A stretch of DNA of 64,000 nucleotides from Ranitomeya imitator (lineage: Eukaryota): assembly GCF_032444005.1 (NCBI RefSeq), contig NC_091291.1:7812001-7876000 (forward strand), in the 5' to 3' direction. Under the pieces are notes generated by a model. It was not told the origin of the DNA and made no database searches. It saw nothing but the letters and a program-made list of their open reading frames with translations. The translations under genes and the position numbers were made by a program. Of this stretch, positions 12,727 through 64,000 are shown one piece after another. Position 1 is the stretch's first letter. Each line of letters starts with the position of its first letter.

Positions 12727-12851
12727 TTAACGAGCCTTCAACCATGACAGGGTAACAAACCAAATCCAACACTCTGTTTGCAGACACGTGCTTGGGGGTG
12801 TTCGCCCCTCATCAGCGCAAAGCAGGAGGTTATTGTCCTGGTGAGAAGCTT

Positions 12852-36146: not shown

Positions 36147-39100
36147 TAGGAGCAGTATTATAGTAGTTATATTCTTGTACATAGGGGCAGTATTATAGTA
36201 GTTATATTCTTGTACATAGGGAGCAGTATTATAGCAGTTATATTCTTGTACATAGGGGCAGTATTATAGCAGTTATATTATTGTACATAGGAGCAGTATT
36301 ATAGTAGTTATATTCTTGTACATAGGGGGCAGTATTATAGTAGTTATATTCCTGCACATAGGGGCAGTATTATAGTAGTTATATTCTTGTACATAGGGAG
36401 CAGTATTATAGCAGTTATATTCTTGTACATAGGGGCAGTATTATAGCAGTTATATTATTGTACATAGGAGCAGTATTATAGTAGTTATATTCTTGTACAT
36501 AGGGGGCAGTATTATAGTAGTTATATTCCTGCACATAGGGGCAGTATTATAGTAGTTATATTCCTGCACATAGGGGCAGTATTATAGTAGTTATATTCCT
36601 GCACATAGGGGCAGTATTATAGTAGTTATATTCTTGTACATAGGGGCAGTATTATAGTAGTTATATTCTTGTACATAGGGGCAGTATTATAGCAGTTGTA
36701 TTATTGTACATAGGAGCAGTATTATAGTAGTTATATTCTTGTACATAGGGGCAGTATTATAGTAGTTATATTCTTGTACATAGGGGCAGTATTATAGTAG
36801 TTATATTCTTGTACATAGGGGCAGTATTATAGCAGTTGTATTATTGTACATAGGAGCAGTATTATAGTAGTTATATTCTTGTACATAGGGGCAGTATTAT
36901 AGCAGTTATATTATTGTACATATGAGCAGTATTATAGTAGTTATATTCTTGTATATAGAAGCAGTATTATAGTAGTTATATTCCTGTAAATAGGGGAAGT
37001 ATTATAGTAGTTATATTCCTGTACATAGGGGCAGTACTATAGTAGTTATATTCTTCTACATAGGGGCAGTATTATAGTAGTTATATTCTTGTACATAGGG
37101 GCAGTACTATAGTAGTTATATTCTTCTACATAGGGGCAGTATTATAGTAGTTATATTCTTGTACATAGGGGCAGTATTATAGTAGTTATATTCTTGTACA
37201 TAGGGGCAGTACTATAGTAGTTATATTCTTCTACATAGGGGGCAATATTATAGTAGTTATATTCTTGTACATAGGGGCAGTATTATAGTAGTTATATTCC
37301 TGTACATAGGGGCAGTACTATAGTAGTTATATTCTTCTACATAGGGGCAGTATTATAGTAGTTATATTCTTGTACATAGGGGCAGTATTATAGTAGTTAT
37401 ATTCTTGTACATAGGGGCAGTATTATAGTAGTTATATTCTTGTACATAGGAGCAGTATTATAGTAGTTATATTCTTGTACACAGAAGCAGTATTATAGTA
37501 GTTATATTCTTGTACACAGGAGCAGTATTATAGTAGTTATATTCTTGTACATATGGGGCAGTATTATAGTAGTTATATTCTTGTACACAGGAGCAGTATT
37601 ATAGTAGTTATATTCTTGTACATAGAGGCAGTATTATAGTAGTTATATTCTTGTACATAGGGGCAGTATTATAGTAGTTATATTCTTGTACATAGGAGCA
37701 GTATTATAGTAGTTATATTCTTGTACATAGGGAGCAGTATTATAGTAGTTATATTCTTGTACATAGGGAGCAGTATTATAGTAGTTATATTCTTGTACAT
37801 AGGGGCAGTATTATAGTAGTTATATTCTTGTACATAGGGAGCAGTATTATAGTAGTTATATTCTTGTACATAGGAGCAGTATTATAGTAGTTATATTCTT
37901 GTACATAGGGGCAGTATTATAGTAGTTATATTCTTGTACATAAGAGCAGTATTATAGTAGTTATATTCTTGTACATAGGGAGCAGTATTATAGTAGTTAT
38001 ATTCTTGTACATAGGGGCAGTATTATAGTAGTTATATTCTTGTACATAGGAGCAGTATTATAGTAGTTATATTCTTGTACATAGGGGCAGTATTATAGTA
38101 GTTATATTCTTGTACATAGGAGCAGTATTATAGTAGTTATATTCTTGTACATAGGGAGCAGTATTATAGTAGTTATATTCTTGTACATAGGGGCAGTATT
38201 ATAGTAGTTATATTCTTGTACATAGGAGCAGTATTATAATAGTTATATTCTTGTACATAGGGGCAGTATTATAGTAGTTATATTCTTGTACATATGAGCA
38301 GTATTATAGTAGTTATATTCTTGTATATAGAAGCAGTATTATAGTAGTTATATTCCTGTAAATAGGGGCAGTATTATAGTAGTTATATTCCTGTACATAG
38401 GGGCAGTACTATAGTAGTTATATTCTTCTACATAGGGGCAGTATTATAGTAGTTATATTCTTGTACATAGGAGCAGTATTATAGTAGTTATATTCTTGTA
38501 CATAGGGGCAGTATTATAGTAGTTATATTCTTGTACATAGGGGCAGTATTATAGTAGTTATATTCTTGTACATAGGGGCAGTACTATAGTAGTTATATTC
38601 TTGTACATATGAGCAGTATTATAGTAGTTATATTCTTGTATATAGAAGCAGTATTATAGTAGTTATATTCCTGTACATAGGGGCAGTATTATAGTAGTTA
38701 TATTCTTGTACATAGGGGCAGTACTATAGTAGTTATATTCTTCTACATAGGGGCAGTATTATAGTAGTTATATTCTTGTACATAGGAGCAGTATTATAGT
38801 AGTTATATTCTTGTACATAGGAGCAGTATTATAATAGTTATATTCTTGTACATAGGGGCAGTATTATAGTAGTTATATTCTTGTACATATGAGCAGTATT
38901 ATAGTAGTTATATTCTTGTATATAGAAGCAGTATTATAGTAGTTATATTCCTGTAAATAGGGGCAGTATTATAGTAGTTATATTCCTGTACATAGGGGCA
39001 GTACTATAGTAGTTATATTCTTCTACATAGGGGCAGTATTATAGTAGTTATATTCTTGTACATAGGGGCAGTATTATAGTAGTTATATTCTTGTACATAG

Positions 39101-42100
39101 GGGCAGTATTATAGTAGTTATATTCTTGTACACAGAAGCAGTATTATAGTAGTTATATTCTTGTACACAGGAGCAGTATTATAGTAGTTATATTCTTGTA
39201 CATATGGGGCAGTATTATAGTAGTTATATTCTTGTACACAGGAGCAGTATTATAGTAGTTATATTCTTGTACATAGAGGCAGTATTATAGTAGTTATATT
39301 CTTGTACATAGGGGCAGTATTATAGTAGTTATATTCTTGTACATAGGAGCAGTATTATAGTAGTTATATTCTTGTACATAGGGAGCAGTATTATAGTAGT
39401 TATATTCTTGTACATAGGGAGCAGTATTATAGTAGTTATATTCTTGTACATAGGGGCAGTATTATAGTAGTTATATTCTTGTACATAGGGAGCAGTATTA
39501 TAGTAGTTATATTCTTGTACATAGGAGCAGTATTATAGTAGTTATATTCTTGTACATAGGGGCAGTATTATAGTAGTTATATTCTTGTACATAAGAGCAG
39601 TATTATAGTAGTTATATTCTTGTACATAGGGAGCAGTATTATAGTAGTTATATTCTTGTACATAGGGGCAGTATTATAGTAGTTATATTCTTGTACATAG
39701 GAGCAGTATTATAGTAGTTATATTCTTGTACATAGGGGCAGTATTATAGTAGTTATATTCTTGTACATAGGAGCAGTATTATAGTAGTTATATTCTTGTA
39801 CATAGGGAGCAGTATTATAGTAGTTATATTCTTGTACATAGGGGCAGTATTATAGTAGTTATATTCTTGTACATAGGAGCAGTATTATAGTAGTTATATT
39901 CTTGTACATAGGAGCAGTATTATAGTAGTTATATTCTTGTACATAGGGGCAGTATTATAGTAGTTATATTCTTGTACATAAGAGCAGTATTATAGTAGTT
40001 ATATTCTTGTACATAGGGAGCAGTATTATAGTAGTTATATTCTTGTACATAGGGGCAGTATTATAGTAGTTATATTCTTGTACATAGGAGCAGTATTATA
40101 GTAGTTATATTCTTGTACATAGGGGCAGTATTATAGTAGTTATATTCTTGTACATAGGAGCAGTATTATAGTAGTTATATTCTTGTACATAGGGAGCAGT
40201 ATTATAGTAGTTATATTCTTGTACATAGGGGCAGTATTATAGTAGTTATATTCTTGTACATAGGAGCAGTATTATAATAGTTATATTCTTGTACATAGGG
40301 GCAGTATTATAGTAGTTATATTCTTGTACATATGAGCAGTATTATAGTAGTTATATTCTTGTATATAGAAGCAGTATTATAGTAGTTATATTCCTGTAAA
40401 TAGGGGCAGTATTATAGTAGTTATATTCCTGTACATAGGGGCAGTACTATAGTAGTTATATTCTTCTACATAGGGGCAGTATTATAGTAGTTATATTCTT
40501 GTACATAGGAGCAGTATTATAGTAGTTATATTCTTGTACATAGGGGCAGTATTATAGTAGTTATATTCTTGTACATAGGGGCAGTATTATAGTAGTTATA
40601 TTCTTGTACATAGGGGCAGTACTATAGTAGTTATATTCTTGTACATATGAGCAGTATTATAGTAGTTATATTCTTGTATATAGAAGCAGTATTATAGTAG
40701 TTATATTCCTGTACATAGGGGCAGTATTATAGTAGTTATATTCTTGTACATAGGGGCAGTACTATAGTAGTTATATTCTTCTACATAGGGGCAGTATTAT
40801 AGTAGTTATATTCTTGTACATAGGAGCAGTATTATAGTAGTTATATTCTTGTACATAGGAGCAGTATTATAATAGTTATATTCTTGTACATAGGGGCAGT
40901 ATTATAGTAGTTATATTCTTGTACATATGAGCAGTATTATAGTAGTTATATTCTTGTATATAGAAGCAGTATTATAGTAGTTATATTCCTGTAAATAGGG
41001 GCAGTATTAGTTATATTCCTGTACATAGGGGCAGTACTATAGTAGTTATATTCTTCTACATAGGGGCAGTATTATAGTAGTTATATTCTTGTACATAGGG
41101 GCAGTATTATAGTAGTTATATTCTTGTACATAGGGGCAGTACTATAGTAGTTATATTCTTCTACATAGGGGGCAATATTATAGTAGTTATATTCTTGTAC
41201 ATAGGGGCAGTATTATAGTAGTTATATTCCTGTACATAGGGGCAGTACTATAGTAGTTATATTCCTGTACATAGGGGCAGTACTATAGTAGTTATATTCT
41301 TCTACATAGGGGCAGTATTATAGTAGTTATATTCTTGTACATAGGAGCAGTATTATAGTAGTTATATTCTTGTACATAGGAGCAGTATTATAGTAGTTAT
41401 ATTCTTCTACATAGGGGCAGTATTATAGTAGTTATATTCTTGTACATAGGGGCAGTACTATAGTAGTTATATTCTTGTACATAGGGGCAGTACTATAGTA
41501 GTTATATTCTTCTACATAGGGGCAGTATTATAGTAGTTATATTCTTGTACATAGGGGCAGTATTATAGTAGTTATATTCTTGTACATAGGGGCAGTATTA
41601 TAGTAGTTATATTCTTGTATATAGGGGCAGTATTATAGTAGTTATATTCTTGTACATAGGGGCAGTATTGTAGTAGTTATATTCTTTTACATAGGGGCAG
41701 TATTATAGGAGTTATATTCTTGTACATAGGAGCAGTATTATAGTAGTTATATTCTTGTATATAGGGGCAGTATTATAGTAGTTATATTCTTGTACATAGG
41801 GGCAGTATTATAGTAGTTATATTCATGTACATAGGGGCAGTATTATAGTAGTTATATTCTTGTATATAGGGGCAGTATTATAGTAGTTATATTCTTGTAC
41901 ATAGGGGCAGTATTATAGTAGTTATATTCTTGTACATAGGAGCAGTATTATAGTAGTTATATTCTTGTACATAGGAGCAGTATTATAGTAGTTATATTCT
42001 TGTACATAGGGGCAGTATTATAGTAGTTATATTCTTGTACATAGGGGCAGTATTATAGTAGTTATATTCTTGTACATAGGAGCAGTATTATAGTAGTTAT

Positions 42101-43354
42101 ATTCTTGTACATAGGAGCAGTATTATAGTAGTTATATTCTTGTACATAGGGGTAGTATTATAGTAGTTATATTCTTGTATATAGGGGCAGTATTATAGTA
42201 GTTATATTCTTGTACATAGGGGCAGTATTATAGTAGTTATATTCTTGTACATAGGAGCAGTATTATAGTAGTTATATTCTTGTACATAGGAGCAGTATTA
42301 TAGTAGTTATATTCTTGTACATAGGGGCAGTATTATAGTAGTTATATTCTTGTACATAGGGGCAGTATTATAGTAGTTATATTCTTGTACATAGGAGCAG
42401 TATTATAGTAGTTATATTCTTGTACATAGAGGCAGTATTATAGTAGTTATATTCTTGTACATAGGAGCAGTATTATAGTAGTTATATTCTTGTACATAGG
42501 GGCAGTATTATAATAGTTATATTCTTGTACATAGGGGCAGTATTATAGTAGTTATAGTCTTGTACATAGGAACAGTATTATAGTAGTTATATTCTTGTAC
42601 ATAGGGGCAGTATTATAGTAGTTATATTCTTGTATATAGGGGCAGTATTATAGTAGTTATATTCTTGTACATAGGGGCAGTATTATAATAGTTATATTCT
42701 TGTACATAGGAGCAGTATTATAGTAGTTATATTCTTGTACATAGGGGCAGTATTATAGTAGTTATATTCTTGTACATAGGGGCAGTATTATAGTAGTTAT
42801 ATTCTTCTACATAGGGGGCAGTATTATAGTATTTTTTTTTTTTCAATTATGTACAGTAATTGCCACTGACAATGTATCACTGAGCCATGTATCTAATTAC
42901 ATCCTGTGTGATACTATCTCTTGTGTAAATTTTGATTTTTCGCTTTCATGGAATTGGATCTTTTCTGACATTGATGTCAGCGTTTCCGCCTGATCGTTCT
43001 TCGGTTCCTTACCACCTGGTTACTGGTCCTCTGGAAGGCAGCCATTATTGCTGATCTTATATTACCAGTCACAGGTATATGAAGCCTCCTGAGTGGAGAA
43101 AATATTTTCTATATTCTGCCAATGTAAAAAAAAATTGTGGAGATCCCTGCCCAGTGCCCTGCATCTGCAATAAAGTGTAGTAGAACAGCGCCCCCAGTGG
43201 CCACTCACACCATTGAAAACCTGTCACCAAAACATGCAAGGAACAGCATTTTATTGTTATACTTTTATTATTTAATATAATAATAATAATTATATTAATA
43301 CAAATAATAACAATAATAATATACATACAAATAATAATGTTATAATAATATTGC

Positions 43355-43398
<44 letters not shown>

Positions 43399-44274
43399 TA
43401 GACGTGTGTGCCTCTTACTCCGGCACTTCTCGCTTTGTAAATGTACTCTTTATATTTCAGCTTCTCTGTACCTCTGCTTGCTTTCATTAAATGGAAACAT
43501 TCATCTTTATATACTGTACAGATCTCATGGTTGTCACAGCTGAGGGTTTGTTACAAAGGTTTTAACAATCGCCTGTGATCTAAACTGGATATATCTGTAA
43601 CAAAACCCTCATCTGAGAGAGGTCTCAGGCCTCTAACCATGAATATTTCCATTCTTTGAGAACAAGCAGAGGTCTTGGATCAGGTTTCAGAATGATTTGT
43701 TTTTTTTATGACATGAAGGAGACTTGTTAGACTGTGATCTCATCCTGAGCCTCCTGGTTCATGAGTAGAATTCCAGAGCTGCAGTTGTAGACTGACACTT
43801 CCACAGTCAGTGCATTGTGATGGGTGATGTTGGGTGGGATCCTGCTGCCCCCTGTCCTGGGTTTCTGTCTGGTCTGTAGATTGTACAGGGCTGTGGCTTA
43901 GGCTGTAGATATAGTGGTTGTAGCAACAATGGGTTTTATCTTCATCTATGAACCAAATGTCATCTAACCATGGAAAGTGTGAGTCACCCCCAAAAGGAGC
44001 AGCAGCAGCAGCACAGCCCCCCAGTCACTGTGCAGACAGATAGCAGAGACCTCCACACCAGGAAGGGGGATGTCAGGCATAATATATAGTCATGGTGGTA
44101 GTAATAGTCCCAGTAGTAATAGCAGGAGGAGGAGGAGTAATTGTGGTAGTAATAGTGGTAGTAATAGTGGTAGTAATAGCTAAAGTAGTTTTTGTAGAAG
44201 TAGTAGAAGTTAGAAGTATTAGTATTAGTCTTAAAAGTAGTAGTGTTAGTAGTCTTAGCAGTAGTAGTGATAGT

Positions 44275-44335
44275 AAAGCGCCGTGGAATAAATGGCGCTA
44301 TAATAATAATAAATAATAATAATAAAAATAATAAT
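44275..44335 (+). mobile_element. L2-type LINE 3'-end fragment, about 61 bp
   Basis: AAAGCGCCGTGGAATAAATGGCGCTA followed by (AAT)n; reverse complement of the 12852 element. Confidence 0.7.
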
Positions 44336-44614
44336 AGTAGTAGTAATCTTAATAGAAGTAGCCTTAGTAGTAGTCATAGTAGTAGTAATCCTAACAGAAG
44401 TACATTCAATAGTAGTATTAGTAATAGCAGTAGACACAGTAGCAGAACTAGGCTTAGTATTAGTAGTAATATTAATCTTAATAGAAGTGCCCTTAATAGT
44501 AGTAGTAGCAGCAGTAATAGCCGGCAAGTAGTTTCAGTAGTAGAATTAGTAGTATCACTATTATTATTTGTAGTATTATCATTTCTTCCATTGTATTTCC
44601 TTCATATATTCTTA

Positions 44615-47600
44615 TAGTAATAGTAGGAATATTTCCAGCAGTATTAGTGATAGTAGGAATATTTCCAGCAGTATTGGTAATAGTAGGAATATTTCCAGCA
44701 GTATTAGTAATAGTAGGAATATTACCAGCAGTATTGGTAATAGTAGGAATATTTCCAGCAGTATTAGTAATAGTAGGAATATTACCAGCAGTATTAGTAA
44801 TAGTAGGAATATTACCAGCAGTATTAGTAATAGTAGGAATATTACCAGCAGTATTAGTAATAGTAGGAATATTACCAGCAGTATTAGTAATAGTAGGAAT
44901 ATTACCAGCAGTATTAGTAATAGTAGGAATATTACCAGCAGTATTAGTAATAGTAGGAATATTACCAGCAGTATTAGTAATAGTAGGAATATTACCAGCA
45001 GTATTAGTAATAGTAGGAATATTACCAGCAGTATTGGTAATAGTAGGAATATTCCCAGCAGTATTGGTAATGGTAGGAATATTTCCATCAGTATTAGTAA
45101 TAGTAGGAATATTACCAGCAGTATTGGTAATAGTAGGAATATTTCCAGCAGTATTAGTAATAGTAGGAATATTACCAGCAGTATTAGTAATAGTAGGAAT
45201 ATTACCAGCAGTATTAGTAATAGTAGGAATATTACCAGCAGTATTAGTAATAGTAGGAATATTACCAGCAGTATTGGTAATAGTAGGAATATTACCAGCA
45301 GTATTGGTAATAGTAGGAATATTACCAGCAGTATTGGTAATAGTAGTAATACTACCAGCAGTAATAGTAATAGTAGGAATATTACCAGCAGTATTGGTAA
45401 TAGTAGGAATATTACCAGCAGTATTGGTAATAGTAGGAATATTACCAGCAGTATTGGTAATAGTAGGAATATTACCAGCAGTATTAATAATAGTAGGAAT
45501 ATTACCAGCAGTATTAGTAATAGTAGGAATATTACCAGCAGTATTAGTAATAGTAGGAATATTTCCAGCAGTATTAGTAATAGTAGGAATATTACCAGCA
45601 GTATTAGTAATAGTAGGGATATTACCAGCAGTATTAGTAATAGTAGTAATATTACAGCAGTATTAGTAATAGTAGGAATATTACCAGCAGTATTAGTAAT
45701 AGTAGGAATATTACCAGCAGTATTAATAATAGTAGGAATATTACCAGCAGTATTAATAATAGTAGGAATATTACCAGCAGTATTAGAAATAGTAGGAATA
45801 TTACCAGCAGTATTAATAATAGTAGGAATATTACCAGCAGTATTAGTAATAGTAGGAATATTACCAGCAGTATTAGAAATAGTAGGAATATTACCAGCAG
45901 TATTAGTAATAGTAGGAATATTATCAGCAGTATTAGTAATAGTAGGAATATTACAGCAGTATTAGTAATAGTAGGAATATTACCAGCAGTATTAGTAATA
46001 GTAGGGATATTACCAGCAGTATTAGTAATAGTAGGAATATTACCAGCAGTATTAGTAATAGTAGGGATATTACCAGCAGTATTAGTAATAGTAGTAATAT
46101 TACCAGCAGTAATAGTAATAGTAGGAATATTACCAGCAGTATTAGTAATAGTAGGAATATTATCAGCAGTATTAGTAATAGTAGGAATATTACCAGCAGT
46201 ATTAGTAATAGTAGTAATATTACCAGCAGTAATAGTAATAGTAGGAATATTACCAGCAGTATTAGTAATAGTAGGAATATTATCAGCAGTATTAGTAATA
46301 GTAGGAATATTACCAGCAGTAATAGTAATAGTAGGAATATTACCAGCCGTATTAGTAATAGTAGTAATATTACCAGCAGTAATAGTAATAGTAGGAATAT
46401 TACCAGCAGTATTAGTAATAGTAGGAATATTACAGCAGTATTAGTAATAGTAGGAATATTACCAGCAGTAATAGTAATAGTAGGAATATTACCAGCAGTA
46501 ATAGTAATAGTAGGAATATTACCAGCAGTATTAGTAATAGTAGGAATATTTCCAGCAGTATTAGTAATAGTAGGAATATTACCAGCAGTATTAGTAATAG
46601 TAGGGATATTATCAGCAGTATTAGTAATAGTAGTAATATTACCAGCAGTAATAGTAATAGTAGGAATATTACCAGCAGTATTAGTAATAGTAGGAATATT
46701 ACCAGCAGTATTAGTAATAGTAGGAATATTACCAGCAGTATTGGTAATAGTAGGAATATTCCCAGCAGTATTGGTAATGGTAGGAATATTTCCATCAGTA
46801 TTAGTAATAGTAGGAATATTACCAGCAGTATTGGTAATAGTAGGAATATTTCCAGCAGTATTAGTAATAGTAGGAATATTACCAGCAGTATTAGTAATAG
46901 TAGGAATATTACCAGCAGTATTAGTAATAGTAGGAATATTACCAGCAGTATTAGTAATAGTAGGAATATTACCAGCAGTATTGGTAATAGTAGGAATATT
47001 ACCAGCAGTATTGGTAATAGTAGGAATATTACCAGCAGTATTGGTAATAGTAGTAATACTACCAGCAGTAATAGTAATAGTAGGAATATTACCAGCAGTA
47101 TTGGTAATAGTAGGAATATTACCAGCAGTATTGGTAATAGTAGGAATATTACCAGCAGTATTGGTAATAGTAGGAATATTACCAGCAGTATTAATAATAG
47201 TAGGAATATTACCAGCAGTATTAGTAATAGTAGGAATATTACCAGCAGTATTAGTAATAGTAGGAATATTTCCAGCAGTATTAGTAATAGTAGGAATATT
47301 ACCAGCAGTATTAGTAATAGTAGGGATATTACCAGCAGTATTAGTAATAGTAGTAATATTACAGCAGTATTAGTAATAGTAAGAATATTACCAGCAGTAT
47401 TAGTAATAGTAGGAATATTACCAGCAGTATTAGTAATAGTAGGAATATTACCAGCAGTATTAATAATAGTAGGAATATTACCAGCAGTATTAGAAATAGT
47501 AGGAATATTACCAGCAGTATTAATAATAGTAGGAATATTACCAGCAGTATTAGTAATAGTAGGAATATTACCAGCAGTATTAGAAATAGTAGGAATATTA

Positions 47601-48900
47601 CCAGCAGTATTAGTAATAGTAGGAATATTATCAGCAGTATTAGTAATAGTAGGAATATTACAGCAGTATTAGTAATAGTAGGAATATTACCAGCAGTATT
47701 AGTAATAGTAGGGATATTACCAGCAGTATTAGTAATAGTAGGAATATTACCAGCAGTATTAGTAATAGTAGGGATATTACCAGCAGTATTAGTAATAGTA
47801 GTAATATTACCAGCAGTAATAGTAATAGTAGGAATATTACCAGCAGTATTAGTAATAGTAGGAATATTATCAGCAGTATTAGTAATAGTAGGAATATTAC
47901 CAGCAGTAATAGTAATAGTAGGAATATTACCAGCCGTATTAGTAATAGTAGTAATATTACCAGCAGTAATAGTAATAGTAGGAATATTACCAGCAGTATT
48001 AGTAATAGTAGGAATATTACAGCAGTATTAGTAATAGTAGGAATATTACCAGCAGTAATAGTAATAGTAGGAATATTACCAGCAGTATTAGTAATAGTAG
48101 GAATATTACCAGCAGTAATAGTAATAGTAGGAATATTACCAGCAGTATTAGTAATAGTAGGAATATTATCAGCAGTATTAGTAATAGTAGTAATATTACC
48201 AGCAGTAATAGTAATAGTAGGAATATTACCAGCAGTATTAGTAATAGTAGGAATATTACAGCAGTATTAGTAATAGTAGGAATATTACCAGCAGTATTAG
48301 TAATAGTAGGGATATTACCAGCAGTATTAGTAATAGTAGGAATATTACCAGCAGTATTAGTAATAGTAGGGATATTACCAGCAGTATTAGTAATAGTAGT
48401 AATATTACCAGCAGTATTAGTAATAGTAGGAATATTACCAGCAGTATTAGTAATAGTAGGAATATTACCAGCAGTATTAGTAATAGTAGGAATATTACCA
48501 GCAGTAATAGTAATAGTAGGAATATTACCAGCCGTATTAGTAATAGTAGGAATATTACCAGCAGTATTAGTAATAGTAGGAATATCACCAGCAGTATTAA
48601 TAATAGTAGGAATATTACCAGCAGTATTAGTAATAGTAGGAATATTACCAGCAGTATTAGTAATAGTAGGAATATTACCAGCAGTATTGGTAATAGTAGG
48701 AATATTACCAGCAGTATTGGTAATAGTAGGAATATTACCAGCAGTATTAGTAATAGTAGGAATATTACCAGCAGTATTAGTAATAGTAGGAATATTACCA
48801 GCAGTATTGGTAATAGTAGGAATATTTCCAGCAGTATTAGTAATAGTAGGAATATTACCAGCAGTATTGGTAATAGTAGGAATATTTCCAGCAGTAACAG
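44615..48900. repeat. 30-bp satellite, about 140 copies, with an internal 1.7-kb duplication
   Basis: Unit GTAATAGTAGGAATATTACCAGCAGTATTA; seven 29-bp deletion units. Confidence 0.97.
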
Positions 48901-49280
48901 TGATAGTGATACTTTGGTTTCCATCAGTGGCAGCAGTGTCTCTTCTTCTTCTCAGTGGTAGTATTATATTATTACACTACAATCCTGAGACCCCTCACAT
49001 CCCCACATTCTCTGCAGAGGACCCTCCTGGATAATAAGGTCCTATCCTCATTATTTATACCTGCAGCCCCCCATCTCTGCTGCCTGTGGAGCTGCTGACA
49101 GGGGTGAGAAGCACCCCTCTTTTTCCATACACCCCTTCCCATCTTTGGGGTCTCTCTGGCACCTGCTGGAGGGATAGTGAGACCTTTAGTGGAGTCGTCT
49201 CTTGGTTTCTTCTTCTCTGCAGCAAGTTCAGGAGTGAAGTTAAAGTTTCAATTTTTTTTCTTCTTGAACATCTGTCACCA

Positions 49281-49308
49281 AAAAGGAAACCAAAGTGACA
49301 TCACTTCC
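49281..49308 (+). promoter_or_regulatory. Candidate promoter of the FLI1-like gene: GGAA core and CRE-like/ETS composite GTGACATCACTTCC (49295-49308)
   Basis: Read directly about 135 nt upstream of the MDCTIK ATG; the TSS is not determinable. Confidence 0.5.
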
Positions 49309-49442
49309 CCAAAAAGAGGGGACCCAGAGTCAGAGAGCAGCACACAGTCACACACAGCCGGCTCTGCTGCAGAACCTCACCTGGACATGGCCTCCTCCTG
49401 AGGCTCCTGCAGCACCTGCTCCTGAGCTCCACTCCAGGTGAC

Positions 49443-49460
49443 ATGGACTGCACCATCAAG
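49443..49460 (+). CDS. fli1b: First coding exon (MDCTIK) of a FLI1-family ETS gene, probably fli1b/fli1rs; downstream exons not seen in the window
   Basis: GACATGG Kozak context, six codons, then strong donor AAG|GTAGGT. FLI1 exon 1 encodes MDGTIK with a phase-0 intron; as recalled, teleost fli1b starts MDCTIK. Head-to-head with ETV2 as in the zebrafish etv2-fli1b pair. Only 18 nt are visible, so the call depends on synteny. Confidence 0.7.
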
Positions 49461-50084
49461 GTAGGTGATGCTGCAGCAGCAGCAGGGAGCCCAGGAGCTG
49501 GACACCAGGGCCTGCAGCCACCCCCTTCCTTCTTCCCCTGTGACACTCAGCCCTGGGGCGGTTATTCCGAAGCCCCCACTCTTTCCTTTTGGTACCAGAT
49601 TTCCTCTTCCTTTAGTGGTTCATGTCTCAGCTTAAATAACAGCAAGAGAAACCTCCAGATCTAGAGCTCAGAGCTGGGACCTGGGGAGGGACCCAGCACC
49701 ACCCAGGGGAGCAGCATGGGGGACCCACTGCAGACCCCTGGGGGGCTCAGCAAGACTGGGGGGCTGCAGCTGTTACCTGTAGTCAATGGACACGAAGGGA
49801 GGAGCAGAGCCTGGTGCTCAGGATCCTGGGGCTGAACAGGTGGGTGATGGCAGCAGAAGGGATAGGTGCTAGGGTGAGGGGAACTAGGAGGAGACCCCCA
49901 CCCCAGACATGAAAATCTGTAATAAGTCCCAGGACGGTGTAATATAGAATCACTGTCTGTTATTCATTGTTACATTTATATTCTTTGTATTGTTTAATAT
50001 ATTGTGCAAATTGGCTTCAACATTTTGTTTTCCATAATTGCTAAAAATATAATATAACGAGATAAGGTAGAAGTATTTTATATG

Positions 50085-50152
50085 AAATAATATTCTGCTG
50101 CCTCCACTTATATAGTCGAAAAAGATATCATTTCCAGTACTGGGATATTTTA

Positions 50153-50199
<47 letters not shown>

Positions 50200-50379
50200 A
50201 TATTAATTTTACCTATTTATATGTATATTTTGCTTATCTGTATATGAGATAATATTCTGCTGCCTCCACTTATATAGTCGTAAAAAATATAATTTCCAGT
50301 ACTGGGATGTTTTATAATTATATATATATATATGTTAATTTTACTTATTTATATGTATATTTTGCTTATCTGTATATAC

Positions 50380-50410
<31 letters not shown>

Positions 50411-50592
50411 GATATATATTCACATTTTATATCCTATTACATTTAGATTTATATATAATTATTCTTATTAATAACAGTTGTAATTAATGATAGTTCTTTT
50501 ATAATTATTAATAATTAATATAAACGATAGATTTTATATTTATACATTCTGCACATATATTATATATAGATGCTATATATATGTGAGCCCAT

Positions 50593-50656
<64 letters not shown>

Positions 50657-51263
50657 TCCTAAATGCTCACATTCTAAGCTTCTGCATTTGTAACATTTCT
50701 TTCGCAGTGCATTTATTTCTTTAATATTTCTTTTCCTTCTCTATAACTTTTCATGCTTCATTTTTAGATTGTCGTTTAGATTCTAGTTCTCAAAGACATT
50801 TGCGCTTTTTTTTTTATCATTTTCCATCAGGGCAGGGGGGCTCATGTTTAAAAAGCTGCAGCTAAAAATGGCGAATATGGAGGGTTGATGAGATGAGTAA
50901 AGATTAAGAGATAAAAGGAATCTGGGCGCGAATAAGATGATGATGATGATGGTGGTTGTAGTCTCAGGTTGGGGACCACTATAAGTAAAATTCTCTCCCA
51001 GATTCTGGATCTTTTGTGTAACCATCTTTATTATTACAGATCTTTATGTTATGTCTGAATTTATACGATTGATGTGAATGCATCGATTACATTTCCATAC
51101 CTGTGTTATAGATTTATGTTTTGTTATATTTGTTCTATTATTTGCCCTAATTATGATTTCTTATTGCTGCATTTATTTTGTTTACTAAGATATGTTTATA
51201 TATATATATATATAATCTTTTTCTTTTTAAATATTGCTGCATTTATTTTGTTTACTAAGATAT

Positions 51264-51298
<35 letters not shown>

Positions 51299-51345
51299 CT
51301 TAATCTTTTTAATTATTGCTGCATTTATTTTGTTTACTAAGATAT

Positions 51346-51392
<47 letters not shown>

Positions 51393-51519
51393 ATCTTTTT
51401 CTTTTTAAATATTGCTGCATTTATTTTGTTTACTAAGATATGTTTATATATATGTGTATATATATATATATATATAATCTTTTTCTTTTTAATTATTGCT
51501 GCATTTATTTTGTTTACTA

Positions 51520-51558
<39 letters not shown>

Positions 51559-51560
51559 CA
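50085..51560. repeat. AT-rich region with (TA)n microsatellites and short tandem duplications
   Basis: (TA)n at about 50155, 50595, 51260 and 51530; about 5 copies of ATTGCTGCATTTATTTTGTTTACTAAGATATGTTTA-(TA)n. Confidence 0.85.
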
Positions 51561-52259
51561 TTTTCTTTTTAGTTATTGTGGCCTTTACTTATTTATTATA
51601 TTTTGGCTTGGTTTTCATTTAATATTATTTGATTATTTTATTTGCAATTTATTTTTATTCTTTTGCATTTGTTAAATGTCGTTTTTTTTTTTCAGATTTT
51701 TTTTATTGATTGATTTCACTTTTTTTTATTTGTAGTTTTTTTTTATTTTCATTTTGTATCATTCTCTGAAAAAAAAAAAAAGGGACCAATTAGTGCAGTT
51801 GTTCTGATCTCCATCAGTAATGTTCTTCACACGATAACTCCTAGCAGGAGGCATGCTGAGAGTTGTAGTCAGAGCCACTGGTTGGAGTCCAGAGTATGTT
51901 TTCTATGGGGCTGCATTAATAACAAATATAAGTCCTATAATAATAAGAGAATTAGAAGGAGACGTGATGGAACGTTCATGAATTATCCAGATAAATGGAG
52001 TTTTCTGTGTTACTTAGTTGCAGTTTTTGGTGAGTTTAGCAGATGAGGAAGCTGCTGTTTCCGCAAAGTGAAGCAGATTCGGAGAGGGGGAGTTAACCCC
52101 TTGTGGGGAGAATAGTTTCAGAGCTCCAGATGTAGCAGAGCCGAGAGTGTCATAAAGGTGAACACTAATGCATAGAATTGTGATCTCATCTTTAGCCAGG
52201 TCTAAGGACACACTCAGCTCTGCCTCATCCATGTCAGGTGTCCACTGTAATGGAGGGAA

Positions 52260-53350
52260 AATGGAAAACCAGATGACAAACTCAGCTTTCCTACTTATAT
52301 ATTATGATAATACTGTAAGATTCAAAAACCCAGATGCCGATTTCTTGAGTTTTTTTGAGAATGGAAAAACTCAGCTCTGCTACATGTGTATATGAGGTTT
52401 GGTGTTAGAAGATATTTTACCAACTGTAATGCTGATTTCTTCAGTTTTGAGAATGACAGTCTCATCTCTGCTGCATTTATATATTAAAAGATGTTTTAGC
52501 AAATATAATAAATGCTGATTTATTGGATTGTGGAGTATGACAAACTCAGCTCTGCTACAACTCTATTAGGAATTTATAATAATGCTGAGAAATGAAATAT
52601 ATAAAATAAATAATAATAATAATAAATATATAATATAATAATTATATATTATATTATATATGATATATTATAATATTATATATTCTATTATTATTATATA
52701 TTAGATTATATATAATAATAATAATAATAATAATACAATAGATACTGCTTTCTGGAGTTGTAAATTAAAACAAACTCAGCTCTGCTACAACTCTATTAGG
52801 AATTTATATTAATGCTGAAAGTTTAAATATGTAAAATAAATAATAATAATAAATATATAATATAATAATATTATAATTATATATTATAATATTAAATATA
52901 TTATTTTATATATTATATTTTTATTTATATTATATATATTACATATTATTATTATATTATTATTTATATTATATATTATAATAATAATAATATAATAGAT
53001 ACTACTTTCTGGAGTTAAAAAGTAAAACAACTCAGCTCTGTTACAAGACTATGAAGAATTTATAATGACGCTGAGAGTTGATATATATTATATATCATAA
53101 ATAGTGAAAAATATAATATATCATAATATAATAATATAATATGATATAGTATAATATAACATAACAGATGCTGATTTCTGGAGTTTTAGAGTAAAACAAA
53201 CTCAGCTCTGCTACATCCCCATATTGTGTCTCTATATTAGGCATAGATAATATGAATTATATATAGGTAAGTTTACTTCCACATAAAACTATTAATACAA
53301 TTCATTATTTTATGGCATACAGATGTAGCAGAGCTGACTTTGTCATTCAA
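52260..53350. repeat. Degenerate AT-rich tandem copies of a dispersed repeat containing ACAAACTCAGCTCTGCTACA
   Basis: The motif recurs at about 52370, 52540, 52772, 53028, 53197 and inverted at 53322. Confidence 0.7.
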
Positions 53351-53839
53351 CTCTCTGGGTATTTGTAGGCAGTACATTCTGATAGATAGGCAGTTAATGC
53401 AATCTGGGGTTCACATGTGAGGGTCTGAGCTAATGAGACGTTCCCACAATGGGGTCCTCTGCTGTCTGCGCCCGCCATAATCTAGTTTCGCCCTTTGTGG
53501 CGGTCACCATTGTTGCAGATGTTGTGTTCTTGCACGTTGGTGTCAGCGTTGTGTAACCTCAGCCCCACCGTCGCACGCCCGCCACCATTTACGGAAAGTG
53601 CTTACACAACACTGTTAACCCTTCTCGTGCTGCAGGAAATCTGCTGAATCTCTGGGCCCATTGTTGTGTCAGAGCCGGGGCCCCGGCAGCATCCTCTGGT
53701 TTCAGACCAGCATGTTTGTACCTACGGCATATTGTGGACCAAATCCTGACCCGTCCGCGGGTCCAATCACCCAAAGTGACAACTTCAGAGGCGGGGGAAG
53801 ATCGGGGCTGTAATATGGGCCCAAAGATCTGAAAAACTG

Positions 53840-55310
53840 CCCGCCGCCTCCATCATCAGTATCTGGTGACTGCCCGTCACCTCCATCATCAGTATCTGGT
53901 GACCACCCGTCTCCTCCATCTTCAGTATCTGGTGACCACCCATCACCTCCATCATCAGTATCTGGTGACCGCCCGTCACCTCCATCATCAGTATCTGGTG
54001 ACCGTCCGTCACCTCCATCATCAGTATCTGGTGACCGCCCGTCACCTCCATCATCAGTATCTGGTGACCGCCCGTCACCTCCATCATCAGTATCTGGTGA
54101 CCGCCCATCTCCTCCATCATCAGTATCTGGTGACCGCCCATCCCCTCCATCATCAGTATCTGGTGACCACCCGTCTCCTCCATCATCAGTATCTGGTGAC
54201 CGCCCGTCACCTCCATCATCAGTATCTGGTGACCGCCCGTCACCTCCATCATCAGTATCTGGTGACCGCCCATCCCCTCCATCATCAGTATCTGGTGACC
54301 ACCCGTCTCCTCCATCATCAGTATCTGGTGACCGCCCGTCACCTCCATCATCAGTATCTGGTGACCACCCGTCTCCTCCATCATCAGTATCTGGTGACCG
54401 CCCATCCCCTCCATCATCAGTATCTGGTGACCGCCCATCTCCTCCATCATCAGTATCTGGTGACCGCCCATCCCCTCCATCATCAGTATCTGGTGACCGC
54501 CCATCCCCTCCATCATCAGTATCTGGTGACCGCCCGTCACCTCCATCATCAGTATCTGGTGACCGCCCATCCCCTCCATCATCAGTATCTGGTGACCGCC
54601 CATCCCCTCCATCATCAGTATCTGGTGACCGCCCATCTCCTCCATCATCAGTATCTGGTGACCGCCCATCCCCTCCATCATCAGTATCTGGTGACCGCCC
54701 ATCCCCTCCATCATCAGTATCTGGTGACCGCCCATCTCCTCCATCATCAGTATCTGGTGACCGCCCATCCCCTCCATCATCAGTATCTGGTGACCGCCCA
54801 TCCCCTCCATCATCAGTATCTGGTGACCGCCCATCCCCTCCATCATCAGTATCTGGTGACCGCCCATCCCCTCCATCATCAGTATCTGGTGACCGCCCAT
54901 CCCCTCCATCATCAGTATCTGGTGACTGCCCGTCACCTCCATCATCAGTATCTGGTGACCGCCCGTCTCCTCCATCATCAGTATCTGGTGACCGCCCGTC
55001 TCCTCCATCATCAGTACCTGGTGACCGCCCGTCTCCTCCATCATCAGTATCTGGTGACCGCCCATCTCCTCCATCATCAGTATCTGGTGACCGCCCATCC
55101 CCTCCATCATCAGTATCTGGTGACCGCCCATCCCCTCCATCATCAGTATCTGGTGACCGCCCGTCACCTCCATCATCAGTATCTGGTGACCGCCCGTCTC
55201 CTCCATCATCAGTATCTGGTGACCGCCCGTCTCCTCCATCATCAGTATCTGGTGACCGCCCGTCTCCTCCATCATCAGTATCTGGTGACCACCCATCGCC
55301 TTCATCATCT
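53840..55310. repeat. 33-bp minisatellite, about 44 copies
   Basis: Unit CCATCATCAGTATCTGGTGACCGCCCGTCACCT; source of the DTDDGGDGRSP repeat ORF. Confidence 0.97.
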
Positions 55311-55689
55311 CTGTCCTCTGCTGATGGTTTGTTACATTGTATCAAGTTTTGGAGAATAGAGAATTGTCTAAACTGGATGCAACAGTAACAAACGCTCTGC
55401 TGTGCAATAATTAGGACTTGTTCTGATCCTCCCTGTTGTGGTAGGCGGCTCCTCGGGGGCGGGGCTAAAGGTGCTCAGGTCAAAGGTCATTCTGGATGAG
55501 AGCTGCACAATGTAAGAAAGTGAACGAGAAAAATCTATAAAGGAGAAATCTCCGAATATCTATCTGGTGATAAAATATAAATTACCGGCAGTCACATGAC
55601 CGGCGCCGCGACTAACGCTGACCGAGATCGGATACAGCAATGCACACCACGGGCCGGATCTGAGACTGTACCACACATTACAGTCTTAG

Positions 55690-58600
55690 GTACACTGGAC
55701 TGGGATTAGATACACAGCTCAGCAGTCGGTATCACACAGGAGAGGATTAGATACACGGCTCAGCAGTCAGTATCACACAGGAGAGGATTAGATACACGGC
55801 TCAGCAGTCAGTATCACACAGGATAGGATTAGATACACGGCTCAGCAGACAGTATCACACAGGATAGGATTAGATACACGGCTCAGCAGACAGTATCACA
55901 CAGGATAGGATTAGATACACGGCTCAGCAGTCAGTATCACACAGGAGAGGATTAGATACACGGCTCAGCAGTCAGTATCACAGGAGAGGATTAGATACAC
56001 GGCTCAGCAGACAGTATCACACAGGAGAGGATTAGATACACGGCTCAGCAGTCAGTATCACACAGGATAGGATTAGATACACGGCTCAGCAGACAGTATC
56101 ACACAGGATAGGATTAGATACACGGCTCAGCAGACAGTATCACACAGTAGAGGATTAGATACCAGGCTGAGCAGACAGTATCACACAGGATAGGATTAGA
56201 TACACGGCTCAGCAGACAGTATCACACAGGAGAGGATTAGATACACGGCTCAGCAGACAGTATCACACAGGATAGGATTAGATACACGGCTCAGCAGACA
56301 GTATCACACAGGAGAGGATTAGATACACGGCTCAGCAGACAGTATCACACAGGAGAGGATTAGATACACGGCTCAGCAGTCAGTATCACACAGGAGAGGA
56401 TTAGATACACGGCTCAGCAGTCAGTATCACACAGGAGAGGATTAGATACACAACCCAGCAGACAGTATCACACAGGAGAGGATTAGATACACGGCTCAGC
56501 AGTCAGTATCACACAGGAGAGGATTAGATACACAACCCAGCAGACAGTATCACACAGGAGAGGATTAGATACACGGCTCAGCAGTCAGTATCACACAGGA
56601 GAGGATTAGATGCACGGCTCAGCAGTCAGTATCACACAGGAGAGGATTAGATACACGGCTCAGCAGTCAGTATCACACAGGATAGGATTAGATACACGGC
56701 TCAGCAGACAGTATCACACAGTAGAGGATTAGATACCAGGCTCAGCAGACAGTATCACACAGGATAGGATTAGATACACGGCTCAGCAGACAGTATCACA
56801 CAGGAGAGGATTAGATACACGGCTCAGCAGACAGTATCACACAGGATAGGATTAGATACACGGCTCAGCAGACAGTATCACACAGGAGAGGATTAGATAC
56901 ACGGCTCAGCAGACAGTATCACACAGGAGAGGATTAGATACACGGCTCAGCAGTCAGTATCACACAGGAGAGGATTAGATACACGGCTCAGCAGACAGTA
57001 TCACACAGGATAGGATTAGATACACGGCTCAGCAGTCAGTATCACACAGGAGAGGATTAGATACACAACCCAGCAGACAGTATCACACAGGAGAGGATTA
57101 GATACACGGCTCAGCAGTCAGTATCACACAGGAGAGGATTAGATGCACGGCTCAGCAGTCAGTATCACACAGGAGAGGATTAGATACACGGCTCAGCAGT
57201 CAGTATCACACAGGATAGGATTAGATACACGGCTCAGCAGACAGTATCACACAGGAGAGAATTAGATACACGTCTCAGCAGTCAGTATCACACAGGAGAG
57301 GATTAGATACACGGCTCAGCAGTCAGTATCACACAGGAGAGGATTAGATACACGGCTCAGCAGTCAGTATCACACAGGAGAGGATTAGATACACGGCTCA
57401 GCAGTCAGTATCACACAGGATAGGATTAGATACACGGCTCAGCAGTCAGTATCACACAGGAGAGGATTAGATACACGGCTCAGCAGTCAGTATCACACAG
57501 GATGGGATTAGATACACGGCTCAGCAGTCAGTATCACACAGGATAGGATTAGATACACGGTTCAGCAGACAGTATCACACAGGAGAGGATTAGATGCACG
57601 GCTCAGCAGTCAGTATCACACAGGAGAGGATTAGATACACGGCTCAGCAGTCAGTATCACACAGGATAGGATTAGATACACGGCTCAGCAGACAGTATCA
57701 CACAGGAGAGAATTAGATACACGTCTCAGCAGTCAGTATCACACAGGAGAGGATTAGATACACGGCTCAGCAGTCAGTATCACACAGGAGAGGATTAGAT
57801 ACACGGCTCAGCAGACAGTATCACACAGGATGGGATTAGATACACGGCTCAGCAGTCAGTATCACACAGGACAGGATTAGATACACAGCTCAGCAGTCAG
57901 TATCACACAGGAGAGGATTAGATACACGGCTCAGCAGTCAGTATCACACAGGATAGGATTAGATACACGGCTCAGCAGACAGTATCACACAGGAGAGAAT
58001 TAGATACACGTCTCAGCAGTCAGTATCACACAGGAGAGGATTAGATACACGGCTCAGCAGTCAGTATCACACAGGAGAGGATTAGATACACGGCTCAGCA
58101 GTCAGTATCACACAGGATAGGATTAGATACACGGCTCAGCAGTCAGTATCACACAGGAGAGGATTAGATACACGGCTCAGCAGTCAGTATCACACAGGAG
58201 AGGATTAGATACACGGCTCAGCAGTCAGTATCACACAGGATGGGATTAGATACACGGCTCAGCAGTCAGTATCACACAGGATAGGATTAGATACACGGTT
58301 CAGCAGTCAGTATCACACAGGAGAGGATTAGATACACGGCTCAGCAGACAGTATCACTCAGGAGAGGATTAGATACACGGCTCAGCAGTCAGTATCACAC
58401 AGGAGAGGATTAGATACACGGCTCAGCAGTCAGTATCACACAGGAGAGGATTAGATACACGGCTCAGCAGTTAGTATCACACAGGAGAGGATTAGATACA
58501 TGGCTCAGCAGTCAGTATCACACAGGATAGGATTAGATACACGGCTCAGCAGACAGTATCACACAGGAGAGAATTAGATACACGTCTCAGCAGTCAGTAT

Positions 58601-60395
58601 CACACAGGAGAGGATTAGATACACGGCTCAGCAGTCAGTATCACACAGGAGAGGATTAGATACACGGCTCAGCAGTCAGTATCACACAGGATAGGATTAG
58701 ATACACGGCTCAGCAGTCAGTATCACACAGGAGAGGATTAGATACACGGCTCAGCAGTTAGTATCACACAGGAGAGGATTAGATACACGGCTCAGCAGTC
58801 AGTATCACACAGGAGAGGATTAGATACACGGCTCAGCAGTTAGTATCACACAGGAGAGGATTAGATACACGGCTCAGCAGTCAGTATCACACAGGAGAGG
58901 ATTAGATACATGGCTCAGCAGTCAGTATCACACAGGATAGGATTAGATACACGGCTCAGCAGACAGTGTCACACAGGATAGGATTAGATACACGGCTCAG
59001 CAGACAGTATCACACAGGGGAGGATTAGATACACGACTCAGCAGCCCGTATCACAGAGGAGAGGATTAGATACACGGCTCAGCAGCCAGTATCACACAGG
59101 GGAGGATTAGATACACGGCTCAGCGGACAGTATCACACAGGAGAGGATTAGATACAGGGCTCAGCAGTCAGTATCACACAGGAAAGGATTAGATACATGG
59201 CTCAGCAGACAGTATCACACAGGAGAGGATTAGATACACGGCTCAGCAGACAGTATCACTCAGGAGAGGATTAGATACACGGTTCAGCAGTCAGTATCAC
59301 ACAGGATAGGATTAGATACACAGCTCAGCAGACAGTGTCACACAGGATAGGATTAGATACATGGCTCAGCAGACAGTATCACACAGGAGAGGATTAGATA
59401 CACGGCTCAGCAGACAGTATCACTCAGGAGAGGATTAGATACACGGCTCAGCAGTCAGTATCACACAGGATAGGATTAGATACACAGCTCAGCAGACAGT
59501 GTCACACAGGATAGGATTAGATACATGGCTCAGCAGACAGTATCACACAGGAGAGGATTAGATACACGGCTCAGCAGTCAGTATCACACAGGATAGGATT
59601 AGATACACAGTTCAGCAGTCAGTATCACACAGGATAGGATTAGATACACAGTTCAGCAGACAGTATCACACAGGATAGGATTAGATACACGGCTCAGCAG
59701 ACAGTATCACACAGGATAGGATTAGATACATGGCTCAGCAGTCAGTATCACACAGGAGAGGATTAGATACACGGCTCAGCAGTCAGTATCACACAGGAGA
59801 GGATTAGATACATGGCTCAGCAGACAGTATCACACAGGATAGGATTAGATACACGGCTCAGCAGTCAGTATCACACAGGATAGGATTAGATACACGGCTC
59901 AGCAGACAGTATCACACAGGAGAGGATTAGATACACGGCTCAGCAGTCAGTATCACACAGGAGAGGATTAGATACACGGCTCAGCAGACAGTATCACACA
60001 GGAGAGGATTAGATACATGGCTCAGCAGTCAGTATCACACAGGATAGGATTAGATACACGGCTCAGCAGTCAGTATCACACAGGATAGGATTAGATACAC
60101 AGCTCAGCAGTCAGTATCACACAGGATAGGATTAGATACACGGCTCAGCAGTCAGTATCACACAGGAGAGGATTAGATACACGGCTCAGCAGTCAGTATC
60201 ACACAGGAGAGGATTAGATACATGGCTCAGCAGACAGTATCACACAGGATAGGATTAGATACACGGCTCAGCAGTCAGTATCACACAGGAGAGGATTAGA
60301 TACACGGCTCAGCAGACAGTATCACACAGGAGAGGATTAGATACACGGCTCAGCAGACAGTATCACACAGGAGAGGATTAGATACACGGCTCAGT
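55690..60395. repeat. 41-bp satellite, about 115 copies
   Basis: Unit GATTAGATACACGGCTCAGCAGTCAGTATCACACAGGAGAG (55745 to 55786). Confidence 0.98.
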
Positions 60396-60649
60396 GTACA
60401 GTGTGATGGGAGTTGTAGTCCTCCATAGCTGATAGTTGTTATTACAGGTTTCCTGTTCTCTCAGTGTCACCTGCAGTCGGACCTTTATCTCACTGACTGT
60501 TTCCAGGTTTGAGCAGTTTCCTTCCTCCTTTGCTCCCGGCCCATCCGCAGCCCCTCAGATCTGTGCCCCCCGGACTGTGACGCTGGGGATCGTCCTAGTA
60601 CTTAACCCAAAGAGATTATACCTGCTGCCATATTGGACAGTCATGTGAT

Positions 60650-62875: not shown

Positions 62876-63239
62876 GCCCAGGGGGCAATACCGTCCGTTT
62901 CTTATGGGACCACCTTTGATCACTTCTCTGTGACTATTTGTGGATTGAGACATGTTATTTGTTCTGCTCCGGAGTCCGATATGTCTCAGTCTGGAGTCCA
63001 GAGGATTATTGAGACTGGATACATTGTAGCAAACCTTCAGCTGTGAGAAGTTTTGGAGGATTTTTTAGATAAGGTTCGTTCCCTGACAGCAAGCAGAGGG
63101 ATGTCAGCTCATGAGCCGCCGCTCACTGTGGATGACTCCGACAGCGGCCGAGTGCAGCCATTCCAATACCATTACATTGGAAAATCGCTCGTAAGGCAAT
63201 TCCCACTGCCCTTGACCTTCAATTACTGGCGCACCTCGC

Positions 63240-64000
63240 TGTAACGTGTAGTCGACGCCGCGTCTCCGAGCTGGAAAGCTGCCGAAACGGGCGGTTACCT
63301 GTCTTCAATACGTGGAATTGGCGACTAATGGACCCCCACGCGACTAATTAAAGGTTACGGGGTCGCCGCTCCTACATTGCATAGGACAGGGGGGCACCTA
63401 CATGACTCCATGTAAGCTGATGGCTTGCTGGGACTTGTAGTGAGGCCTGCAGCCCCCGTTATCAGGACTGGTGGCCGCTCACCACTTCTTCTCCAGCACA
63501 GGAAGCCGCGCGTCCATTGTGATAATCCGCTCTTATCTGAAGCTCCAGACGGTAGGAAATTTCCGTCCCGGCATCCGGAGTATCCCCCCTGCACAATCAG
63601 GGAGAGGCCTGGACCCAGAGGAATGCGGGATCTGGAGAAACACCCGATCCCCCCAATCCTGAGACCCCCGGACGCCAATCCGCTACATGCGATGCCGCAT
63701 TACGACCGTCCGCGATGGCGAGACGGAGCCGCAAACGCTTCCAAATCTGAAAACTCACCGTAGACTTCAATGCAAACCCCGGACCACCGAAAACATCCCG
63801 GCCTCGCCGCAGTGCGGCCATATTAGAGATACGAGTCGCCACCGTGCACGACTCACGTTGAAGTCTATGGAATCTAAGTCGCATGCAACTCGCAACCTGC
63901 ATCTGAGCGACACTGCGGCAGCCGCGCCGTGGTCACAGTCGGCCGTGGGTCGCAACGTGACGCTATTGACCACCGCTAGACGCCGCCATCTTCATGCCAC
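63240..64000. promoter_or_regulatory. CpG-rich, promoter-like island
   Basis: Dense CpG; ZNF143-like GCTGGGACTTGTAGT (63427-63441); YY1 consensus CCGCCATCTT (63983-63992). Part may be MITE-derived. Confidence 0.4.

Follow-up and report, generated by a model that had tools for sequence, protein, structure and literature searches.

Results

A six-codon exon lies divergently from ETV2

At the start of the window, by which we mean the whole 64,000-nt stretch of DNA that was analysed, lie the 3′ exons of HAUS5, followed tail-to-tail by an ETS gene on the minus strand, ETV2, and then by ~41 kb of mostly tandem-repeat sequence. At the far side of these repeats, a tiny exon on the plus strand encodes MDCTIK and ends in a phase-0 splice donor. 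We consider this exon (49443-49460) very likely to be the first coding exon of FLI1B (zebrafish fli1b/fli1rs), an ERG-subfamily ETS gene that is paired with ETV2, and we use that name for the gene below. The features on the HAUS5 and ETV2 side of the locus are as follows:

1..1824, plus strand: HAUS5 3′ exons, tail-to-tail with ETV2 (Pfam HAUS5)
4593..8312, minus strand: ETV2 gene, six exons, stop codon at 4595-4593
~8312-8241, 7942-7775, 6027-5719 and 5266-5135, minus strand: ETV2 exons mapped by tblastn
5022-4901 and 4793-4596, minus strand: ETV2 ETS-domain exons, Pfam Ets on both, splice sites read
8313..49239, no strand: ETV2-FLI1B intergenic region, ~41 kb, mostly tandem-repeat arrays

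The minus-strand neighbour is ETV2, rather than ETS1 or ETS2. It carries a C-terminal, ETS1-like ETS domain, a Pfam scan of its six exon ORFs gave no hit to a PNT domain, and it lies beside HAUS5; the RBM42 side of the expected ETV2 synteny was seen in Ascaphus and Pristimantis (below). When the last ETV2 exon was run by HMMER against 1.84 billion representatives, the best full-length relatives were proteins named 'ETS translocation variant 2' from Hyperolius riggenbachi (90%) and Spea bombifrons (86%), followed by ETV2 of Hymenochirus, Ambystoma and Rhinatrema; no FLI1-type protein was returned among the representatives by this ETS exon. The Pfam HAUS5 match covers profile positions 572-619 of 643, and the tail-to-tail order of HAUS5 and ETV2 is also found in Spea and Hymenochirus, an arrangement likewise stated for amphibians in the literature (PMC10992995). 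Since the best relatives are frog ETV2 proteins and the HAUS5 arrangement is common to Spea and Hymenochirus, the genome is anuran and the neighbour is ETV2. This bears out the original prediction, made from the sequence of the window, of an exon head-to-head with ETV2 in a frog-like genome.

ETV2 (8312-4593, minus strand) and FLI1B exon 1 (49443, plus strand) face apart across ~41 kb, and the window shows no further convincing gene between them. The intergenic minisatellites include a 35-mer present 288 times (32711-42831), a 30-mer present 143 times (44615-48907), a 44-mer present 55 times (29510-31913) and a 27-mer present 99 times (19118-21787), and the same region holds an assembly gap (13110-14008). 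Inside the 35-mer array, an ORF on the minus strand (33493-33906) resembles the C-terminal end of a LINE reverse transcriptase of CR1/L2 type; it gave no Pfam hit. Further arrays occupy FLI1B intron 1 (53847-55309; a 41-mer ×114 at 55703-60394; a 26-mer ×87 at 60649-62875), and a HAUS5 intron is filled by 7.4 copies of a 48-bp tandem repeat (835-1189).

The exon itself reads ATGGACTGCACCATCAAG|GTAGGT at 49443-49466 on the plus strand, that is, ATG GAC TGC ACC ATC AAG followed by the donor GTAGGT, exactly as originally described. Its surroundings form a short, non-repetitive, GC-richer island flanked by large minisatellite arrays, and with a coding part of just 18 nt, the exon might be thought a chance ATG...GT match within that island. 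The degenerate pattern ATGGAYNNNACNATHAARGT (M-D-x-T-I-K plus GT), scanned on both strands, matches a single time in the 64 kb, and the M-D-x-T-I-K plus GT pattern was found in 0 of 100 dinucleotide-preserving shuffles of the window. Moreover, RNA is spliced exactly at the donor, and an identical exon occupies the orthologous position in fishes and in Ascaphus, as described below. Shuffles, RNA splicing and orthologous exons together rule out a chance match, to which we assign a practically negligible probability.

The exon is transcribed and spliced in frame to an exon beyond the window

The FLI1B features defined by the pattern and by RNA are as follows:

49443..49460, plus strand: coding part of FLI1B exon 1, MDCTIK, with a phase-0 end (pattern, RNA contigs, fish and Ascaphus counterparts)
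49325..49460, plus strand: FLI1B exon 1 according to RNA contigs, a 5′UTR of at least ~118 nt plus 18 coding nt
49461..49466, plus strand: splice donor GTAGGT of intron 1 (contig loose ends from 49461 in three runs)
49461..64000, plus strand: FLI1B intron 1, incomplete, running off the window; largely minisatellites, exon-2 letters absent
49752..49839, plus strand: possible alternative first exon 1b, in-frame ATG at 49786, MDTKGGAEPGAQDPGAEQ, donor GTGGGT (contig of a single run)

RNA evidence was drawn from contigs of Logan assemblies of four public RNA runs (X35, X11, X12 and X13); the 231 bases around the exon are also present in DNA runs of several organisms and in small RNA runs of several studies. 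Mismatch-free alignments were obtained for contigs of X35 (49325-49461), X12 (49345-49461) and X13 (49343-49461), and the X11 contig aligned over 49378-49449, after which it carries one synonymous base difference; one low-depth X11 contig extends back to 49216. After exon 1, the contigs of all four runs read AGGCCCTCACAGTGGTCAGTGAGGACCACC (in X11, ...GAGGCCCTCAAAGTGG), which translates in frame across the junction as MDCTIK-EALTVVSEDH, with EALKV in X11, which represents one organism. Exon 2 itself opens with G, as does the intron at 49461, and the junction thus reads AAG|GAG. The contigs of the four runs measure 144, 846, 1093 and 1420 nt, three of them therefore carrying much downstream sequence; 30 letters past the junction were seen of each contig, and 16 residues of the gene's own protein.

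Allowing up to 3 mismatches, these 30 exon-2 letters have no match in the window, and motif scans for exon 2 within the window found none, in agreement with the original prediction, which had noticed no exon 2 over the following 14.5 kb. Exon 2 therefore lies past position 64000, which gives intron 1 a length of more than 14.5 kb. Of the two fates that the prediction had considered, a gene continuing past 64000 or a relic exon, only the former stands: contigs of four runs are spliced to an exon 2 outside the window, so the gene continues. The junction that it had proposed looking for, from 49460 to an EALSVVS-type exon, is the one that the contigs cross into EALTVVSEDH or EALKV. The segment 49443-49460 is a transcribed and spliced first coding exon in use: a six-codon MDC[TSP]IK first exon in phase 0, spliced on RNA contigs to an EAL.VVSED exon, which also upholds its predicted assignment to an ERG-subfamily gene.

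A second first exon may be in use further downstream. One 118-nt X12 contig aligns there with 7 mismatches and has a loose end, AGGCCCTCACAGTGG..., as in the exon 1 contigs; the stretch 49752-49839 could possibly be an alternative first exon spliced to the same exon 2. We also note that a FLI1B-like model from Crotalus (P0358) starts with MDTEVNGAPAG before EALSVVS, a start that may equal the alternative exon 1b.

A cysteine at position 3 marks the ETV2-linked paralogue

Herring, sturgeon and paddlefish each have an MDCTIK|GTAGGC exon head-to-head with etv2, 2.3-9 kb upstream of it. In herring and sturgeon, a gene encoding SAM_PNT and Ets domains is called from this exon onwards, and herring exon 2 begins EALSVVSEDQ; no gene is called at the paddlefish exon. 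Starting from a herring exon-3 ORF, we collected FLI1B proteins stepwise. The fish fli1rs proteins fetched begin with MDCTIK (60), MDCSIK (7) or MDCPIK (6), and none with MDGTIK; most of the 60 MDCTIK proteins are named 'Fli-1 proto-oncogene, ETS transcription factor-related sequence' or Fli1b, and the MDCTIK start was also present in one whale-shark and one bichir protein. FLI1 proteins fetched start with MDGTIK or MFQTVPDTSSYVK and ERG proteins with MASTIK or MIQTVPDPAAHIK, and Cys3 was found in none of the FLI1 and ERG proteins fetched.

Because fli1rs/Fli1b proteins start with MDC.., FLI1 with MDGTIK and ERG with MASTIK, Cys3 (MDCTIK) is a simple marker of the ETV2-linked paralogue, separating FLI1B, FLI1 and ERG in every sequence examined. 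At the window locus, residue 3 is Cys and the neighbour is ETV2, and not the MDGTIK start of canonical FLI1 and its linkage to ETS1, a gene that does contain a PNT domain; likewise, neither the MASTIK or MIQTVPDPAAHIK start of ERG nor its linkage to ETS2 is found there. The Cys3 start, common to the etv2-linked fish genes, the fish fli1rs proteins and an Ascaphus protein, thus agrees with the prediction of a fli1b-type gene.

Orthologous genes were found in other frogs. The Ascaphus truei protein (P0351), deposited as 'hypothetical protein FKM82_013149' in a model without most of the ETS domain, starts MDCTIKEALSVVSEDH / MDCTIKEALSVVSEDHTLF and is identical to the window transcript at 15/16 residues; its exon 1 is ATGGATTGTACTATCAAG|GTAGGT, and its intron 1 spans ~22 kb. 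The Pristimantis euphronides protein (P0379) is named 'Friend leukemia integration 1b'; its model is without exons 1-2, and exon 2, read immediately upstream of the gene model (L007:8917), encodes EALSVVSEDH. An unnamed metaclust protein of frog type (P0368) reads EALSVVSEDHTMF, and the EDH motif is common to the window transcript, Ascaphus, Pristimantis and P0368. A SAM_PNT domain was detected in both P0351 and P0379, and an Ets domain also in P0379. In Ascaphus and Pristimantis, an RRM gene that we take to be RBM42-like comes next after FLI1B, in tail-to-tail orientation. Adjacency to ETV2 was not demonstrable within the 10-kb flank in either species, the 10 kb upstream of Spea ETV2 yielded no MD.TIK exon, and the Hymenochirus contig ends at ETV2.

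The tiny first exon is missing from several FLI1B gene models, namely those of Pristimantis, snakes (P0357, P0358) and a turtle (P0347); in the snake and turtle models, spurious residues precede EALSVVS.

Frog FLI1B proteins group with neither FLI1 nor ERG

We inferred a tree from 43 proteins (445 columns, IQ-TREE, LG+C20) with ETS1/ETS2 as outgroup. As the PNT/ETS exons of the window gene lie beyond the window, Ascaphus, Pristimantis and P0368 served as its proxies, tied to the window locus by the N-terminal 16 residues, a promoter block and synteny. The ERG clade (100/100), the FLI1 clade (98/99) and the frog trio (100/100) were recovered, with the trio placed outside FLI1 and ERG as sister to turtle, lizard and snake FLI1B-like proteins (85/87). 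AU tests rejected trees uniting the trio with FLI1 (p 0.0001) or with ERG (p 0.0005). The basal order of the shark, bichir+sturgeon and teleost FLI1B groups is unsettled in this tree, and the best tree unites all FLI1B sequences in one clade with weak support (49/36). In terms of the PNT+ETS phylogeny proposed with the original prediction, it is the frog proxies that lie outside FLI1 and ERG (AU p≤0.0005). The frog branch is long (0.46), and the gene is thus fast-evolving in frogs.

Some database proteins are apparently misnamed (P0354/P0341/P0373 set). P0354, deposited as 'FLI1 factor, partial [Polypterus senegalus]', groups with ERG in the tree; a Lerista 'hypothetical protein' is FLI1; and an 'unnamed protein' from Ranitomeya joins retroelement and ERG sequence in a chimera.

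These results bear on whether the window gene could instead be the canonical FLI1 (or ERG) of the frog, lying near ETV2 by accident. The MDGTIK exon of FLI1 and the MASTIK exon of ERG share the six-codon structure and the EALSVVS junction, and the 16 residues seen are all that is at hand of the window gene itself; yet its neighbour is ETV2 beside HAUS5 and not ETS1 or ETS2, and its Cys3 occurs in the fli1rs/FLI1B set and in no FLI1 or ERG protein fetched. The AU tests, furthermore, exclude the EDH-sharing frog proteins from both clades, and the RBM42-like RRM gene that follows in Ascaphus and Pristimantis is as expected of an ETV2 region. With the ETV2/HAUS5 neighbours, Cys3 and the AU tests on the frog proxies, a canonical FLI1 or ERG identity is largely refuted, and we regard it as extremely unlikely.

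Conserved non-coding blocks flank exon 1

Two blocks of non-coding conservation were identified on either side of the exon:

49240..49315, plus strand: promoter block alignable with the sequence upstream of Ascaphus FLI1B exon 1; E-box CATCTG, ETS-type GGAA/TTCC motifs
49574..49647, plus strand: intron-1 conserved non-coding element, rich in ETS-type motifs (TTTCCT.., CTTCCT; fish alignment)

By blastn, the promoter block is 88% identical to Ascaphus over 49 bp (window 49267-49313 against L006 9750-9797). The intron-1 element matches sturgeon and paddlefish at 80% over 80 bp and herring at 75% over 97 bp. It lies ~115 bp into the intron, as far downstream of exon 1 as its counterparts in the three fishes, and its degenerate pattern matches exactly in 3/3 fish loci; in Ascaphus L006 it was not found within 3 mismatches, though the promoter block is shared. 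The promoter block and the intron-1 element are likely regulatory inputs.

This conservation also bears on the possibility that exon 1 is a relic, part of a decaying pseudogene or a non-coding transcript without a functional downstream gene. Such decay might be read into the 14.5 kb downstream without exon 2, the flooding of the intron and intergenic region with minisatellites, the long frog FLI1B branch (0.46) and the variation between organisms of the residue after EAL (T versus K). Ascaphus likewise has a long intron 1 (22 kb), however, and intact PNT (+ETS) proteins are encoded by the orthologous genes of other frogs; in three studies, contigs of 846, 1093 and 1420 nt stay in frame beyond the junction, and conservation of the promoter block and of the intron element spans very long distances. 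We therefore judge a relic exon to be very improbable, and retain a first coding exon of a continuing FLI1B gene as the best explanation.

Discussion

Our data place a transcribed FLI1B gene beside ETV2 in a frog. Transcription starts near 49325-49345, from a promoter near 49.3 kb, exon 1 supplies six codons, and splicing at AAG|GT crosses a long, repeat-filled intron to the EALTVVSEDH exon. By analogy with the Ascaphus and Pristimantis orthologues, the full product would combine a PNT (SAM_PNT) domain with an ERG-type ETS domain and would bind GGAA-core sites. The promoter block with its ETS motifs, shared among frogs, and the intron-1 element, shared with ray-finned fishes, may both feed into FLI1B regulation. 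In zebrafish, Fli1b is partly redundant with Etv2 in vasculogenesis and acts upstream of scl/tal1 in haematopoiesis (PMC12010910), and the frog gene might accordingly be expected to share part of its role with Etv2 in precursors of endothelium and blood.

A wider reading, which we offer tentatively and hold to be rather unlikely as a whole, is that frogs in general, probably including Xenopus, express this fast-evolving third FLI1/ERG paralogue (P0368 being frog-like), that the intron-1 element, retained since the divergence from ray-finned fishes, is an ETV2/FLI-responsive enhancer coupling the two genes, and that exon 1b provides an alternative N-terminus. If this were true, haemangioblast studies of Fli1, Erg and Etv2 in frogs may have overlooked a third paralogue.

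Three ancestral vertebrate couplets, ETS1-FLI1, ETS2-ERG and ETV2-FLI1B, have been described by one group (PMC7604627, 2020; PMC10992995, 2024), with ETV2-FLI1B kept in lizards and geckos, FLI1B lost in mammals and both genes lost in birds. For amphibians, these two papers give ETV2-RBM42-HAUS5 linkage alone, with FLI1B unmentioned, and a 2025 zebrafish paper treats fli1b as the product of a fish 'genomic duplication' (PMC12010910). The window frog retains this pair of blood and vessel regulators that was lost in mammals and birds. The original prediction was thus right that an amphibian keeps the ETV2-FLI1B pair, as ETV2, RNA and Cys3 indicate; its framing of the pair as a novelty is overstated, the couplet having been published for lizards and frog proteins having been deposited. 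Because the couplet was published in 2020 and 2024 and frog FLI1B proteins were already in databases, our finding is an expected infill and no surprise, which supplies the step missing between fishes and squamates in the three-couplet picture and leaves the known evolutionary scheme unchanged. The contigs add direct evidence at the RNA level for an intact, expressed ETV2-FLI1B couplet in an anuran. The finding also corrects the annotation of a gene that is easy to overlook, its first coding exon being just 18 nt long, and points frog developmental biologists to a gene that may act redundantly with Etv2 and Fli1.

Among known systems, the gene compares most directly with zebrafish/teleost fli1b (= fli1rs), with which it has in common the MDCTIK exon, the phase-0 GTAGG donor, the EAL.VVSED junction, the head-to-head partner etv2 and the intron-1 non-coding element. 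It differs in its spacing, which minisatellite arrays have expanded from 2-9 kb in fishes to ~41 kb in the window frog, and in exon 2, which reads EALSVVSEDQ in fish and EALTVVSEDH here; the long branch, moreover, is that of the frog proteins, and function has been tested in zebrafish only. In two other frog species, Ascaphus FLI1B resembles it in MDCTIKEAL.VVSEDH (15/16 residues), the promoter block and the long intron 1, and Pristimantis FLI1B in its EALSVVSEDH exon 2. The squamate ETV2-FLI1B pair (PMC7604627; PMC10992995) is likewise an ancestral couplet kept in a tetrapod, with reptile FLI1B sister to that of frogs, whereas the squamate papers showed the couplet in lizards and geckos. Finally, canonical FLI1 (ETS1-linked) and ERG (ETS2-linked) share the tiny first coding exon, the long intron 1, the EALSVVS exon 2 and alternative first exons, but start with MDGTIK and MASTIK, have other partner genes and form separate clades.
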